Of a stretch of 57,850 nucleotides of DNA, positions 27,221-43,960 are shown one piece after another; position 1 is the first letter of the stretch, and every line of letters begins with the position of its first letter. The position numbers were made by a program, and so were the translations under genes. This DNA is from Octopus bimaculoides (lineage: Eukaryota): the NCBI RefSeq assembly GCF_001194135.2, contig NC_068984.1, forward strand, positions 144,753,179 to 144,811,028, given 5' to 3'. Under the pieces are notes generated by a model. It ran no database searches. It was not told the DNA's origin and saw nothing but the letters and a program-made list of their open reading frames with translations.

Positions 27221-27601
27221 CTGCCCCCGCCCCTGATGATGTCGCAACCGACAAGGATGCAATTGAAAATCCACCCAAGGGGCTTCTTGGTTTGTGTCCA
27301 CCTCCTAAGGAGGGTGGAGGCAGCTGGTGGGAATCATTATGGTTAGCAAGACCTTTCTGAGATGAAGATGACATGGTTTGTGTGGATGGTGATGACGACG
27401 GAACATCATAGTGTGCTTGTGAAAAGTCTATGGGGAACGTACGACGTTTGCTCACCACATCGTACTCGTGTGGCAACTCAGCAGCCGCCTGTAGAAAGTC
27501 ACCCCCTGACCGACGGAAGTCGTTGCCATGGGGATTCTGTTTGGTTACAGTTCGTAAGGAATCGAGTGATGGTGGAACAGGTGCAGATTCCGCATGTAAA
27601 C
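27221..27601 (-). CDS. Exon of the adaptor gene (GLHAESAPVPPSLDSL...HEYDVV...HYDVP...SSGAGA); 3' end at or inside gap 26799-27220
   Basis: Acceptor ttccttgttttcgttttctgtttcag at 27602, phase 1, compatible with the 28565 exon. Open to the gap edge (ORF 26763..27623). Confidence 0.88.
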
Positions 27602-28564
27602 CTGAAACAGAAAACGAAAACAAGGAATTGATTCAACCAATAACGAAAAGACAAAGAGTCGTGCAAGAAGTGGTCTTGTCTACATGATAATATACACTAC
27701 TAAACTGCTTGTGGTGAGATTTGAACCTAAGACTTGCAGGTGGTTTATCCTGTCCCCCTCTGACTTTTAATGCAATTGAAAAAACCGCATTATTTATGGA
27801 ATGACCCAATATTTTTAAAATTCTGTAACAAATGAAGTTAGACTTTGTAGGGGACAAGTGTATCAGTGCTCTATGTAGTTACTTGATATGCTAGAAATGG
27901 CAGCTTAAAATCTGCCCCAGTTTTTAGCTATTTACCCTGCTGAGGACCAGAACCCAATTCTTGCCGTAAAGCCTGTGTTTTGTTATCTACATAGAACTTC
28001 CTTGTTCCTTATCTACATATCTTGCTCACAACCAGAATGGAATGGTTATTGTAAGGCTCATGTGCTTTTTTTTTTTTTTGTATATCGCAGTCCTCTGACT
28101 TGCCAGCTCATCATACTGTCCAACACATACCAGCATGGAAAACAAGCATTAAATGATGACGACAATGATGATGCTCAAGTCAGTCCTTAGCTTTTCACTG
28201 AAGATCAGAACAGACGGTTGCTGTTGGGCCAAAGTGCTTAATTATTTACATATAACTATTCTGGTCCTCACCTCTTTATTTTGCTGCTCTTGGGCCCATG
28301 TGTATTAATTATTTATGCAGAGTGGTTGGCATTAGGAAGGGCATCCAGCTGTAGAAACCAAGCCAAGTCAGACTGGGGCCTGGTGCAGCTCTCTGGTTTA
28401 TCAGCTCCAGTCAAACCATCCAACTCATGCCAGCATGGAGAGTGGACATTAAATGATGATGATGTAGAGTTGTCCCAATTCCTGACTGGTCACTTTGCTA
28501 AGGACCAGCCCCCACAAGACCCTGGTGTATTATTATGAAAGTATATAACTTCTACAGTTCTTAC

Positions 28565-28676
28565 CTGTTGCTCCAATTTCAGCATATGTTTCGCTAATTT
28601 GGCTATTTCGTTTTGGGATGCTCTCGGAACGGTTTGTCCGACGCACGACGACACCATCCCCTGAACCACCATCAAC
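28565..28676 (-). CDS. Internal exon of the adaptor gene (VDGGSGDGVVVRRTNRSESIPKRNSQISETYAEIGAT)
   Basis: (TC)n tract then cgacctag acceptor at 28677; donor CAG|GTAAGA at 28564. 112 nt, phase 0 to 1, contains YAEI. The ORF track shows a different frame here. Confidence 0.88.
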
Positions 28677-28681
28677 CTAGG

Positions 28682-28717
<36 letters not shown>

Positions 28718-30405
28718 CAATTTAGATAATTAAACTGGACCAAATAATAACAATTTGGCAATAAGCTCACAAGCATTTTCATTCACATCCATACAACTTA
28801 TGTAACTACAGAACCTACAAATGAAGGAACGAACCTAAAGCAAGCCTGGAGAAGAGAAAGTATGTTGTTGATGAGGTCACCAATGGCAACAAAAAGGACT
28901 GACAAATCTGATTGATTGATTAACTGAACAATTAATCAAACAATCAATTAGTTAATTTGTTAAGTAATTAACCAACTGATAAATAATAAAGAAGCAAAAT
29001 AGAACCAGTGCAAGTATTTATTGTTGGCATAATGACCCTCCTGAGATACAACAAAATCTATTTCAACCACACGAGTCCACATCAAGAATCTTTCAACCCA
29101 AATATGAAAATGAAAACAAAATCGATTTCTTCTGAGTAGGCTGACAACCCGTACCATAAAACTAGCAGAAGCCATGGCCAGACGAACCCTCCCCCTCCTG
29201 CAACATTAACCGATTTCTAATGGTGCGTTACATTTTTCACACAATTAAGTTTGATACTTTGAGTCGTCTCCCCTGCCTTTGCAATGTTCATCTATATTTT
29301 AATGTTGCCTTTTCAACGCTTGCATGGGTCAGACGGAACTTACGGCAGCATACTTTCATGCACAGGTGTGGCTGTGTGGTAAGATGCTTGCTTCTCAACT
29401 ACATGGTTCCGGGTTCAGTCCCACTGCGTGGCACCTTGGGCTATCTTCCATAGCCTCTGGCTGACCAATGCATCTGGTAGCCAAAAACTGAAAGAAACCT
29501 GGTGTGTGTGTGTATATANNNNNNNNNNNNNNNNNNNNNNNNNNNNNNNNNNNNNNNNNNNNNNNNNNNNNNNNNNNNNNNNNNNNNNNNNNNNNNNNNN
29601 NNNNNNNNNNNNNNNNNNNNNNNNNNNNNNNNNNNNNNNNNNNNNNNNNNNNNNNNNNNNNNNNNNNNNNNNNNNNNNNNNNNNNNNNNNNNNNNNNNNN
29701 NNNNNNNNNNNNNNNNNNNNNNNNNNNNNNNNNNNNNNNNNNNNNNNNNNNNNNNNNNNNNNNNNNNNNNNNNNNNNATCAGCCAAAACGTTGTGTTAAC
29801 AACAAACAAGATGGGGACAAATATCCGTCAAATGGAAATAATAATAATAATAATATATATATATATATATATATATAAATATAGATAGATAGATGTGTGT
29901 CTGTTTGTGTTTGTCTCCCTCCACTGTTTGACAACCAGTAGTGGTTTGTTTATGTCCACATAACTTAGCAGTTCGGCAAAAGTGATCGATAGGCTTCGAT
30001 AAAACGAGTTCTAGGATCAATTTGATTTAGTAAAAAAAAAAAAAAAACGTTCAGGGCAGTGCCCTAGCATGGTCGCAGTCAAACGACTGAAACAAATAAA
30101 AGATAAATCTATAAATGCATGATGGGTTTTTATGCAGTTTTTATCCAAGGCTCATATGGGAGAAGAGATTTGCTCAAGGTGAACATTTAATAAATTAATT
30201 AATTTGAAATTTCTGTCTCCCTCACTATTTTTGCATGCATGCATGCACGCACGTATGTGTTTGCCTGAGACTCAACTTCAGAACCTGTGGTTGCCGGATG
30301 AACTACTTAAACACATAAGCTTGCCTGCACCTTTAATCTCTATCAAATTCACTGTGTTCACTCCCTTAAATTCACTCTTTATAAACACAAACGGTTTGTA
30401 CTCAC

Positions 30406-42017: not shown

Positions 42018-42050
<33 letters not shown>

Positions 42051-43274
42051 TAGAACCAATCTCTTCAACAGTTTTCTGATGAATCACAGAAAAATAAAAA
42101 TCAATTTGTCTCCGGCATTCATTAATAAAAATGAAATAACTGCAAGATGATGATGATGTGGTTTGTTTAGCCTCAGGTCAGGTCCAGTAAAGTAGACCTA
42201 CGCTCAAAGGTATTCCAGCCATGACCAACTCCTATTATACTGTATATCAAAGACTACATTACTTAATGTGTCCCTCGTTGTCATTTAGCCCCAGGTCAGG
42301 GCTGATCAAAAATATTCTAGATGGGACTAATTCTCATATCCAGACATATTGTGGCTACAACCACATCATATAATGCAAATTTTTGTTTTTTTATTAAGAC
42401 AGAAGAGTCTGCCTTGAGGATGTCTGGCTGCTGTTTCTAGCAGGTGGTGGTGGTTGATGAGGTCAGTGCTGATACAAGACATGACAATGATGGTTGCAGA
42501 TGTTGCTATGAAAGTAATGTAAGCATCAATAACCAGGAATTGGGAGACGGGGAGGGGGAGGGGGCCAGTCAGTTACATCAATCTCAGTTCTCAAGGATGA
42601 AAGGCAGAGTCGATTTTGGTAGCATTTGAACTCAGAACGTAAGGACAGAAGAAATGCTGTCAAGCATTTTGCCCTGCGTACTAACGATTCTGCCAGCTCG
42701 CTGCCTTAATAATGATCCTTCCTACTATAGGCACAAGGCAGGGCCAGACACGTCACAAGATCCACAGACAACAGGTGGACCTGTGCAGTTGCTGAGTGGT
42801 ATCTGAGAGAGTGGAAAAGGCCACTTGGAAGGCCTCCACGACAATGGGGAGACAATTTAGTTAACCAATTTGGGTCAAAAGGGAAAAGAATGGTACAATG
42901 AAGTGAGAACAAGAAGCGCATTGTGACCAGTGGTGTATAACAGCAGAATCTGAATGTTTGGTTGATACTGTGATATAATGAGCTTCCATACAGTTGCCAA
43001 GAGCCAATCTCATGCCCAAGATTACAGAGGACCCCCAGGCAAGGTGCAATGCAGTGAGATTGAACCCATGACAACACAATAATAAACGTAACAAAGCAAT
43101 CTCCATACAGCATTTAACATTTTCTTTTATATAAAGCACAAAAGGCTGTTATGTTGTAAAGATTAAAAATTATAAAAGTCAGGGAAAAAAAACAAAGTTA
43201 TTTTTTCCTAAAAATTATTGATTCTGTATCCCACGTCACAATACTGATGGCAGATAGGATATTGATGATGATGG

Positions 43275-43326
<52 letters not shown>

Positions 43327-43820
43327 AATAATAAGAAGAACAACGACATGGTGATGCTGGTGTAGTTGTGGAAGGTTGTTGAATAAAGTCTGATGGATGG
43401 ACGGACAATAACTGATACAAGTGGGTGGTGGTAGGAGTAAATGGGAGAGAGTAAGAGGGCATCAGACATTGAAAGGTGTGTAGGAGAGGGGTGGTGGTGG
43501 TGATGATGATGATCTTTGTCTCTTTGGAGGAAATCAAAGAGTCTTTGAGAGACAATAGCGAAAGATTTACAATAAGCAGCAGAGTGTGTGTGTGTGTGCA
43601 TATACCCATGTATGTGTGCATGCATGTCTGTGTGTGTGTGTGCATGCATATGTCTGTATGTATGTATGTTTATGTCTGTGTGTATCTATTGTCTATGCTC
43701 ATATATATATGTGTGTATACGTTTATGTCCAAGTATGTGTCTGTATGTCAGTATGTCCATGCCCACATGTGAGTACGAGAAGCAGGAACCCAGGGACCAA
43801 GTCCCTGGCCCTCTACTTAC

Positions 43821-43960
43821 CTCTCCTTACATGTATTGCAGAGAGCAAAGAGAAAGACCAGGATCAACATGGCAGCTAGCCCTCCAACTAAACCACCAGA
43901 TATGATGCCGATAGTGTCTTCTTTTGGTAAAGAGGCTTCCAATAGCTTACGACCAGCTAC
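43821..43960 (-). CDS. Transmembrane exon of a PAG1/Cbp-like tyrosine-motif adaptor (VAGRKLLEASLPKEDTIGIISGGLVGGLAAMLILVFLFALCNTCKE); 5' end hidden in gap 43961-44610
   Basis: Open frame with a ~24-aa hydrophobic helix followed by CxxC (CNTC) and KE. Donor AG|GTAAGT at 43820, phase 2, matches the acceptor at 32871. Confidence 0.85.

Follow-up and report, generated by a model that had tools for sequence, protein, structure and literature searches.

A leaderless tyrosine-rich membrane protein of Octopus bimaculoides belongs to an unannotated bilaterian family probably related to PAG1/Cbp and LIME1

A 57,850-nt stretch of the Octopus bimaculoides genome (NC_068984.1:144,753,179-144,811,028, assembly GCF_001194135.2), called the window here and meaning the whole of the DNA examined, carries on its minus strand a gene whose product crosses the membrane once and has a long, tyrosine-rich tail. 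We consider it likely that this locus is the octopus member of an unannotated bilaterian family of leaderless single-pass scaffolds, the invertebrate counterpart of PAG1/Cbp and LIME1, whose members would serve as palmitoylated scaffolds recruiting Csk. PAG1/Cbp and LIME1, membrane scaffolds that bring Csk to Src, are known from work on vertebrates, largely on their immune cells, and proteins of this kind have so far been described in vertebrates only. Csk and the Src-family kinases themselves are conserved all the way from choanoflagellates to humans (PMC3492796). The literature searched, an incomplete library, contained no account of PAG or LIME counterparts in invertebrates. The family is probably a relative of PAG1 and LIME1 that predates their duplication, and we file the octopus protein in an unnamed family remotely homologous to this pair, probably with the same way of working. 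It is not filed as "PAG1", because its score against the Pfam model lies below the threshold and its C-terminus is not of the PDZ-binding kind.

The initial annotation had joined five minus-strand exons, at 43960..43821, 32870..31801, 30527..30406, 28676..28565 and 27601..27221. Their AG acceptors and GT donors can be read in the sequence, and the junction phases of 2, 1, 0 and 1 do join them in frame. The five exons thus stand, but the chain is incomplete, as tblastn with an ortholog (P0001, an 829-aa "uncharacterized protein" of Octopus vulgaris/sinensis) places two further coding exons with AG/GT sites inside what had been taken for the first intron, at 39594..39522 (73 nt, KKEQSKTGTLPKMMTDSTHRDVVQ) and 37515..37406 (110 nt, SIIESDHLAVDFETGIIPLSNGIAPTKSWTSDLAMFT). 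The predicted octopus ortholog contains both, as do cephalopod transcripts. Because the omitted exons total 183 nt, the direct join from 43821 to 32870 stays in frame. The corrected model comprises at least seven coding exons with intron phases 2,0,2,1,0,1, has both of its ends within assembly gaps, and yields 669 visible residues with no stop codon. These are 99.1% identical to P0001, which had been found at 98% identity in a search of 5.8 billion proteins. One might still suspect open frames that line up by chance, or a pseudogene, given that the window is gap-rich and strewn with dispersed repeats and that both ends of the coding sequence are missing. The near-identity to the ortholog, the 669 codons free of stops, the seven canonical splice junctions, spliced transcripts in another cephalopod and motifs conserved across phyla effectively refute such an explanation, to which we give next to no weight.

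Judging from the translation of exon 1, the membrane anchor is as initially described, with a G-rich transmembrane (TM) segment (IGIISGGLVGGLAAMLILVFLFAL, 43912..43841) directly followed by a juxtamembrane CNTC (43840..43829); the two cysteines are C41/C44 in the 669-residue window model and C45/C48 in P0001. The ortholog starts with MDGI followed by VAGRKLL. In L004, a 3.3-kb transcript contig of another cephalopod, the ATG of an intronless ortholog coding sequence (MDEILPGRRLL) is preceded, two codons upstream, by a stop in the same frame, and the segment outside the membrane is therefore about 20 residues long, with no signal peptide. This supports the short ectodomain proposed at the outset, and a large upstream ectodomain, the alternative raised alongside it, is rejected for cephalopods by the same stop. 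An AlphaFold2 run on the mollusc alignment, with the full 829-aa ortholog, predicted helices at residues 24-49 (the TM segment) and shorter ones at 478-491 (within the ARESL block described below), 736-752, 797-807 and 813-828. The predicted local distance difference test score (pLDDT) was below 50 for 650 of the 829 residues, with a mean of 45.5, and no folded domain was predicted. A single TM helix, a juxtamembrane di-cysteine motif and a domain-less tail are thus retained from the initial description, the tail of about 780 residues being acidic, rich in Pro and Ser and, according to the model, intrinsically disordered.

All tyrosine motifs listed in the initial annotation, together with YDVP and PPEPPR, are found in the translation. 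Thirteen of the 18 tail tyrosines are of the form Yxx[V/I/L], compared with a mean of 2.9 in shuffled sequences and none of 100,000 shuffles reaching 13, and 15 of the 18 have an acidic residue no more than three positions upstream. The 669 visible residues contain one site resembling an immunoreceptor tyrosine-based inhibitory motif (ITIM; ISYSIV), one resembling an immunoreceptor tyrosine-based switch motif (ITSM; TAYDRV), one YDVP and no YxN (Grb2) motif. Sites of the type bound by Src-family SH2 domains are YETV in the window and, in the ortholog's C-terminus, HFYEEV and HTYEDV, which an assembly gap (26799-27220) most likely hides in O. bimaculoides together with YQSL and DPNYETV.

The protein belongs to a widespread family. 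In a first protein search, 24 homologs, none of them annotated, came from molluscs (cephalopods, gastropods and bivalves), and the mollusc profile gave 122 hits when run against 1.84e9 representative proteins. Named among these are the brachiopod Lingula, the annelids Capitella and Owenia, the nemertean Tubulanus, and, on the deuterostome side, the echinoderms Diadema, Anneissia and Amphiura, the hemichordates Ptychodera and Saccoglossus and the amphioxus Branchiostoma. Among the hits with a retrievable source none came from a fly or a nematode, in a survey that included no systematic search of those groups. In the databases the members are labelled "uncharacterized" or carry the misnomers "dentin sialophosphoprotein-like" and "IWS1 homolog". 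The family of the cephalopod homolog initially proposed spans the bilaterians and is not restricted to cephalopods.

Family members share a fixed order of blocks: the TM segment with the juxtamembrane cysteines, R-x-LP-x-P, PP-x-P-x-[RK], Y-[TS]-[KQE]-V-[TS]-[AV]-RES-[LI], and C-terminal DPxY and H-x-Y-[EQ]-[ED]. Every block that falls in the read sequence is present in the window product, in the same order. The most conserved of them, in exon 5, is Y-[TS]-[KQE]-V-[TS]-A-R-E-S-L-x-S-I, whose tyrosine is present in all 24 molluscs and all nine other bilaterians. Across the 24 molluscs ten tyrosines do not vary, and the tyrosine motifs are conserved well beyond octopus; the tyrosines of DPYSKI, DPYSSV, DDYATV, PYTKV, NMYETV, NTYATV, DPNYETV, YEEV and YEDV are kept in all 24, and most of them in at least seven of the nine other bilaterians. 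YDVP is conserved in just three of the 24 molluscs. The first juxtamembrane cysteine is likewise kept outside octopus (22/24 molluscs and 9/9 other bilaterians), and the second is found in 21/24 and 4/9, respectively. Octopus and Lingula have all six intron positions and phases in common (2,0,2,1,0,1) and are on this account clear orthologs.

The N-terminus varies within the family. In Branchiostoma (P0207), Ptychodera (P0225), Saccoglossus (P0234) and Tubulanus (P0229), a signal peptide and a Cys-containing ectodomain of 120-190 residues without a Pfam match precede the membrane segment, ending in G-R-K-L-L just before it; the molluscs and Owenia begin only a few residues before the corresponding RKLL/RRLL motif. 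Given this distribution, the ectodomain was lost, or gained, more than once. Scallop paralogs (P0238 of Mizuhopecten and P0250 of Ylistrum) have yet another N-terminus, which resembles a C-type lectin domain and is followed by a TM segment and a membrane-proximal tail matching the first ~270 positions of the family profile. Among the decapodiform cephalopod transcripts, P0003 differs from P0002 by an 11-residue insertion, TLSASKILHEN, placed exactly at the octopus exon 3/4 boundary, which suggests an alternative micro-exon or an alternative splice site.

The relationship to PAG1 and LIME1 was assessed with profiles. In Pfam, the sole meaningful match of full-length P0001 is PAG (E 3.2e-5, 23.6 bits, against a cut-off of 27), and no other transmembrane adaptor protein (TRAP) family matches it even at E<=10. 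This signal is seen solely in full-length P0001, with exon 2 included, so that the original five-exon product gave no usable Pfam match. The Pfam LIME1 model matched none of the 24 molluscs or nine other invertebrate members, and only the teleost protein P0254 passed it (40 bits, together with a sub-threshold PAG match); P0254 is also the weakest species-named match of the mollusc profile (E 3.6e-4 in the library of 1.84e9 proteins). Many teleost LIME1 proteins (P0254, P0291-P0409) carry both LIME1 and PAG labels in Pfam.

An invertebrate profile broadened to 17 sequences from seven phyla aligned with tetrapod PAG1 over 205 columns and, equally well, with fish LIME1 (hhalign, 95.6% and E 1.1e-8 in both cases, all hhalign E-values given here being those of single pairs). 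The alignment with PAG1 is collinear through the TM segment, the Cys motif, an NG patch, R-[EQ]-LPxxP, YxxVK sites, EYAxVxKxxK and PPPVPxK, and a second collinear match (E 9e-4) takes in the Csk site AMY317SSVNKPG. With LIME1, the main alignment extends from the TM segment to the first tyrosine sites, and a second collinear match (48%, E 1.8e-4) reaches the C-terminal FYESISDVK, aligned with H-x-YEDV-x-EV. When the TM segment was left out, two collinear matches scored 36 and 35, compared with at most 20.9 for 30 locally shuffled PAG1 tails and 14.8 for the reversed tail; reversed LIME1 scored 24. In the opposite direction, a hidden Markov model (HMM) of vertebrate PAG1 and LIME1 gave eight of the 17 invertebrate sequences scores above all 357 decoys, which preserve local composition, that of the TM block included: Saccoglossus reached 29.3 bits, Mya 20.1, Lingula 15.5 and Octopus 14.6, and the decoy maximum was 5.9.

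PAG1 and fish LIME1 align with each other over nearly their full length (hhalign, 98.7%, E 2e-16) and themselves look like paralogs, a relationship that we did not find stated in the literature consulted here. Taken together, the comparisons suggest that the invertebrate family and PAG1/LIME1 probably share common descent and that the invertebrate gene is about equally related to the two. As for the more specific history, in which PAG1 and LIME1 would be vertebrate duplicates of one ancient bilaterian gene and the octopus locus its mollusc descendant, we lean slightly towards it.

Gene structure, compared here among turtle PAG1, Lingula, Diadema and octopus, agrees in part. The coding sequence of turtle PAG1 is split into six exons (phases 2,0,1,0,0). 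In octopus, Lingula, Diadema and turtle PAG1 alike, a phase-2 intron closes the exon for the TM segment and cysteines, and a phase-0 intron closes the small exon after it; the former exon ends two residues past the second cysteine in turtle PAG1 and three in octopus. A large exon of turtle PAG1 then extends to just past PPPVPxK and is followed by a small exon that opens six residues before a tyrosine, in the context SLSYKSREE, where octopus has PYTKVTARES.

Several observations weigh against this reading of the family as a counterpart of PAG1 and LIME1. The PAG match of P0001 lies below the Pfam gathering threshold and comes mainly from the TM/juxtamembrane segment; Pfam gives no PAG match at all for the remaining 23 molluscs and nine non-mollusc members, so that most of the family lacks a match to either PAG or LIME1. 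The mollusc-only profile aligned with PAG1 in the TM/CxxC region alone (hhalign, 77%), which was judged insufficient, and the profile was broadened for this reason. TM helices, as well as convergent SH2 and SH3 ligands, can raise profile-profile scores, and the tail matches are individually modest, at E ~1e-3. The profile alignment offers two alternative mappings for the octopus tyrosine that matches PAG1 Y317. The cysteine motif is CxC, and not CxxC, in most other molluscs; the C-terminus lacks a class I PDZ ligand (the octopus ortholog ends in WSQEK and that of squid in CSQEQ); and the third and fourth introns, although in similar places, are shifted by one phase (2,1 in octopus, 1,0 in PAG1). 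Finally, palmitoylation, phosphorylation, raft residence and the binding of Csk and Src are attributed to the octopus protein from motifs. Much of this would be expected of a convergent analog, that is, a TM-anchored phosphotyrosine scaffold of independent origin whose likeness to PAG1 reflects TM composition, a cysteine motif, SH2 ligands and PxxP, and which could still work like PAG1. Two of the five PAG1 intron phases differ, as just described, and the family's signature blocks YTKVTARESLASINAR, GGSGDGV and PPSLDSL have no clear PAG1 counterpart.

We nevertheless regard such convergence as unlikely. The 205-column alignment is collinear and includes features that involve no tyrosine (the NG patch, R-E/Q-LPxxP and PPPVPxK) in PAG1 order; the LIME1 match is independent, equally strong and extends to the C-terminal YE[S/D]I-x-[D/E]-V; shuffled and reversed controls score far lower; no other Pfam TRAP family is matched; and the first two intron phases are common. 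Of the two possibilities left side by side in the initial annotation, a homolog or a convergent analog, the collinear profiles, the controls and the first two intron phases favour the former.

If the family works as PAG1 and LIME1 do, its mechanism can be outlined. The juxtamembrane cysteines would be S-palmitoylated, biasing the protein to ordered membrane domains, and Src-family kinases would phosphorylate the acidic Yxx[V/I] sites of the tail. The SH2 domain of Csk could then dock on pY-[A/S/T]-x-V(-x-K) sites, for which DDYATVNKLPR, PYTKVTAR, DPYSSVDG and EYDVVSKRR (YAVVNKRR in squid) are candidates. The Csk site of PAG1 is YSSV (PMC3492796), and sites for the Csk SH2 domain follow Y[T/A/S][K/R/Q/N][M/I/V/R], often with K at +5, as in AEYARVQKRK and DVLYSRVCKPK of LIME and DTYAVVQKRG of PTP-HSCF (PMC2194115). 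DPYSSV, DDYATVNK, PYTKV and EYDVVSKRR fit this consensus at the level of the motif, the position equivalent to Y317 being ambiguous. Src-family SH2 domains would dock on pYE[E/D/T]V, represented by YETV and by YEEV and YEDV of the hidden C-terminus, and RQLPSPP and PPPEPPR are putative SH3 ligands. By bringing a kinase and its inhibitor Csk together at the membrane, the protein would exert negative feedback on Src-family signalling, as do PAG1 and LIME1.

That the protein binds Csk, SHP2 or Crk, as proposed in the initial annotation, is in each case a prediction from motifs. SHP2 or Crk may find room at the ITIM-like, ITSM-like and YDVP sites, though these are few or poorly conserved. An alternative would make such partners the main ones, the protein then being a scaffold for SHP2-type phosphatases (at ITIM/ITSM-like sites) or for Crk/Nck/Abl (at YDxP) downstream of a co-receptor, with no part in Csk/Src feedback. 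ISYSIV, TAYDRV and YDVP in the window protein are compatible with it, the signal peptide and 120-190-residue Cys-containing ectodomain of some non-molluscs suggest a receptor-like ancestry, and the scallop paralogs pair a lectin-like ectodomain with a related tail. We think this rather improbable, since sites of this type are few, with YDVP limited to three of 24 molluscs, the invariant sites are those of the Csk (Y-A/S/T-x-V) and Src (YEEV, YEDV and YETV) types, and the cephalopod protein has no ligand-binding ectodomain.

Should the octopus protein be a Csk-recruiting scaffold homologous to PAG1 and LIME1, this class of palmitoylated adaptor would predate vertebrates and adaptive immunity, with an origin in early bilaterians, and would have been overlooked because the family is unannotated. 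In that case the invariant block that PAG1 lacks (YTKVTARESLASINAR...YETV...YATVDGGSGDGV) would represent an ancestral interaction module that has disappeared or decayed in vertebrates. For Csk recruitment to membranes outside the vertebrates the locus would provide a concrete candidate, the invariant tyrosines together with the linear motifs make a short list of candidate functional sites, and an anonymous gene gains a name and a corrected exon model.

Along the minus strand, the partial exon 1 starts at the gap 43961-44610 and encodes the short outside segment VAGRKLLEASLPKEDT, then the TM helix, CNTC and KE, before a GTAAGT donor in phase 2. Exon 2 (39522..39594; (S)KKEQSKTGTLPKMMTDSTHRDVVQ), which is 100% identical to P0001 in tblastn, ends in phase 0, and exon 3 (37406..37515; SIIESDHLAVDFETGIIPLSNGIAPTKSWTSDLAMF(T)), with a family-conserved 'P-x-x-NG' patch, in phase 2. 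Exon 4 (31801..32870), the large tail exon of 1070 nt, ends in phase 1. It contains GRQLPSPPGP (32804-32833), the counterpart of PAG1 SRELPRIPP; the tyrosine motifs YNHI, YDRV, YASV, YASL, YSIV and YSKI; YSSV (32168-32179); DDYATVNKLPR, with YATV at 32003-32014, which fits the consensus for Csk SH2 sites; and PPPEPPR (31913-31933), the counterpart of PAG1 PPPVPVK. Exon 5 (30406..30527, 122 nt; (P)KAEYPYTKVTARESLSSINARQRLLNMYETVPETENTYAT), with a predicted short helix, includes YETV (30444..30433) and ends in phase 0 inside a YATV motif, between YAT and V, at an intron whose position and phase are the same in Lingula. Exon 6 (28565..28676, 112 nt; VDGGSGDGVVVRRTNRSESIPKRNSQISETYAEIGAT(G)) ends in phase 1, again at an intron position found in Lingula. 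The visible 381 nt of exon 7 (27221..27601) encode PVPPSLDSL (27555-27581), HEYDVVSKRR (YDVV at 27453-27464) and YDVP (27399-27410), and the frame stays open into the gap 26799-27220.

The animal DNA of the window has many gaps, 11 runs of N in all. P0001 aligns continuously, with no residues missing, across the gaps at 29519-29777, 34022-34052, 36125-36257 and 40180-40236; these four gaps accordingly lie within introns, and no coding sequence is lost in them. At the 5' end, the tblastn alignment begins at residue 5 of P0001, which corresponds to window base 43960, and the gap 43961..44610 hides the ATG and the first four codons (MDGI in the ortholog), probably along with part of the 5' untranslated region. 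A tblastn search placed no part of P0001 residues 672-829 in any sequenced letters of the window, so that a further exon downstream is ruled out for the read portion. The missing end, of ~158 codons plus the stop and with DPDYQSL, DPNYETV, HFYEEV, HTYEDV and the C-terminal helices, most likely sits in the gap 26799..27220, since what has been read below 26798 is rich in A and does not code; Lingula encodes the equivalent region in a single terminal exon. This gap is stated as 422 N, against at least 477 nt of coding sequence needed for 158 codons and a stop, and either its length is underestimated or the scaffold is mis-joined there.

No second recognisable gene was found in the window to compare with the surroundings of human PAG1 (8q21) and LIME1 (20q13.33), two regions that probably share paralog pairs such as TPD52/TPD52L2, STMN2/STMN3 and ZBTB10/ZBTB46. 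An Rfam scan detected no tRNA or other Rfam family at threshold anywhere in it. Two dispersed repeats were observed. The first, of ~145 bp, has copies 70-87% identical to one another, on either strand, within the gene's introns and in the DNA flanking it, at 28281-28538 and some 14 other sites (e.g. 6705-6841, 12048-12194, 34818-34962, 36810-36956, 44738-44884, 49565-49710 and 51615-51759); it looks like a short interspersed nuclear element (SINE)-type element and yields recurrent pseudo-open reading frames (pseudo-ORFs) of the form ...WLALGRASSCRNQAKSDWGLVQ...PMPAWKVDVK. The second, of ~150-210 bp and with copies 71-91% identical, lies at 40540-40912 and some 13 other sites (e.g. 9167-9312, 15378-15505, 29360-29517, 39232-39443 and 47711-47869), yielding the pseudo-ORFs ...HCMAPWASVFYYSL... 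and ...VRSLLPNHMVPGSAPLHGTLGKCLLL. At 5826-6694 (minus strand), adjacent ORFs of 128 and 130 aa resemble the N-terminal part of a reverse transcriptase of non-long terminal repeat retrotransposons (...AGPDDFPAILLKLCKHALVKPLQILFQ...NYRPISLT...) and are probably a decayed long interspersed nuclear element (LINE) fragment. Long ORFs rich in His, Thr and Ser within intron 1, a short way past exon 1 (43208-43690, minus strand), derive from CAT/CAC and ACA-type simple repeats and are not coding.

Among known transmembrane adaptors, LAT and NTAL (LAT2) resemble the octopus protein as leaderless TM proteins with a juxtamembrane CxxC and a disordered tail rich in tyrosine. They are, however, defined by several YxN sites for Grb2/Gads, and LAT also by a PLC-gamma site, whereas octopus has zero YxN. 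A Grb2 hub of the LAT/NTAL kind is unlikely because these sites are lacking, and we rejected this reading on the absence of YxN from the 669 residues and of a Pfam match to these families at E<=10.

LIME1 (PF15332) comes closer. It is like the octopus protein in topology and cysteine motif, the long teleost forms having 450-600 aa, and the two are collinear in mYSxVCKxxKK/lYSxVNKxxK, DPxYxT[VI]D and FYESISDVK/H-x-YEDV-x-EV. Its mapped Csk sites AEYARVQKRK and VLYSRVCKPK resemble octopus DDYATVNKLPR and EYDVVSKRR. Unlike the acidic octopus tail, however, LIME1 is basic, and its mammalian form is short (human LIME1 has 295 aa); for the block SKSDTRLHE...RPASMDLL, which is specific to LIME1, octopus offers a faint equivalent at best (RPSSMDG).

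Compared with PAG1 (PF15347), the octopus protein is about twice as long (829 vs ~430 aa) and contains the invariant blocks YTKVTARESLASINAR, GGSGDGV, PPSLDSL and DPNYE[ST]VEEA, which are absent from PAG1. PAG1 ends in the PDZ ligand ITRL, which binds EBP50; octopus is without it, and other family members end in TRL, THL, TEL, TSL, TGL or EKL. The cysteine spacing of most molluscs and the third and fourth intron phases, as described above, also set the two apart. On the other side, PAG1 has the same leaderless type III topology, with an outside segment of ~16-20 residues, one TM segment, a juxtamembrane cysteine motif (CSSC, compared with CNTC) and a disordered acidic tail, and the YSSV core is found in both. 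YEEV and YETV of PAG1, like YESI of LIME, resemble the Src-type sites of octopus (YETV and the hidden YEEV and YEDV). PAG1 and octopus share the position and phase of the first two introns and a common order of features: the NG patch, SRELPRIPP/GRQLPSPP, YxxVK, AEYASVDRNKK/DDYATVNKLPR, PPPVPVK/PPPEPPR, and then Y[A/S/T]xV and YE-x-[V/I].

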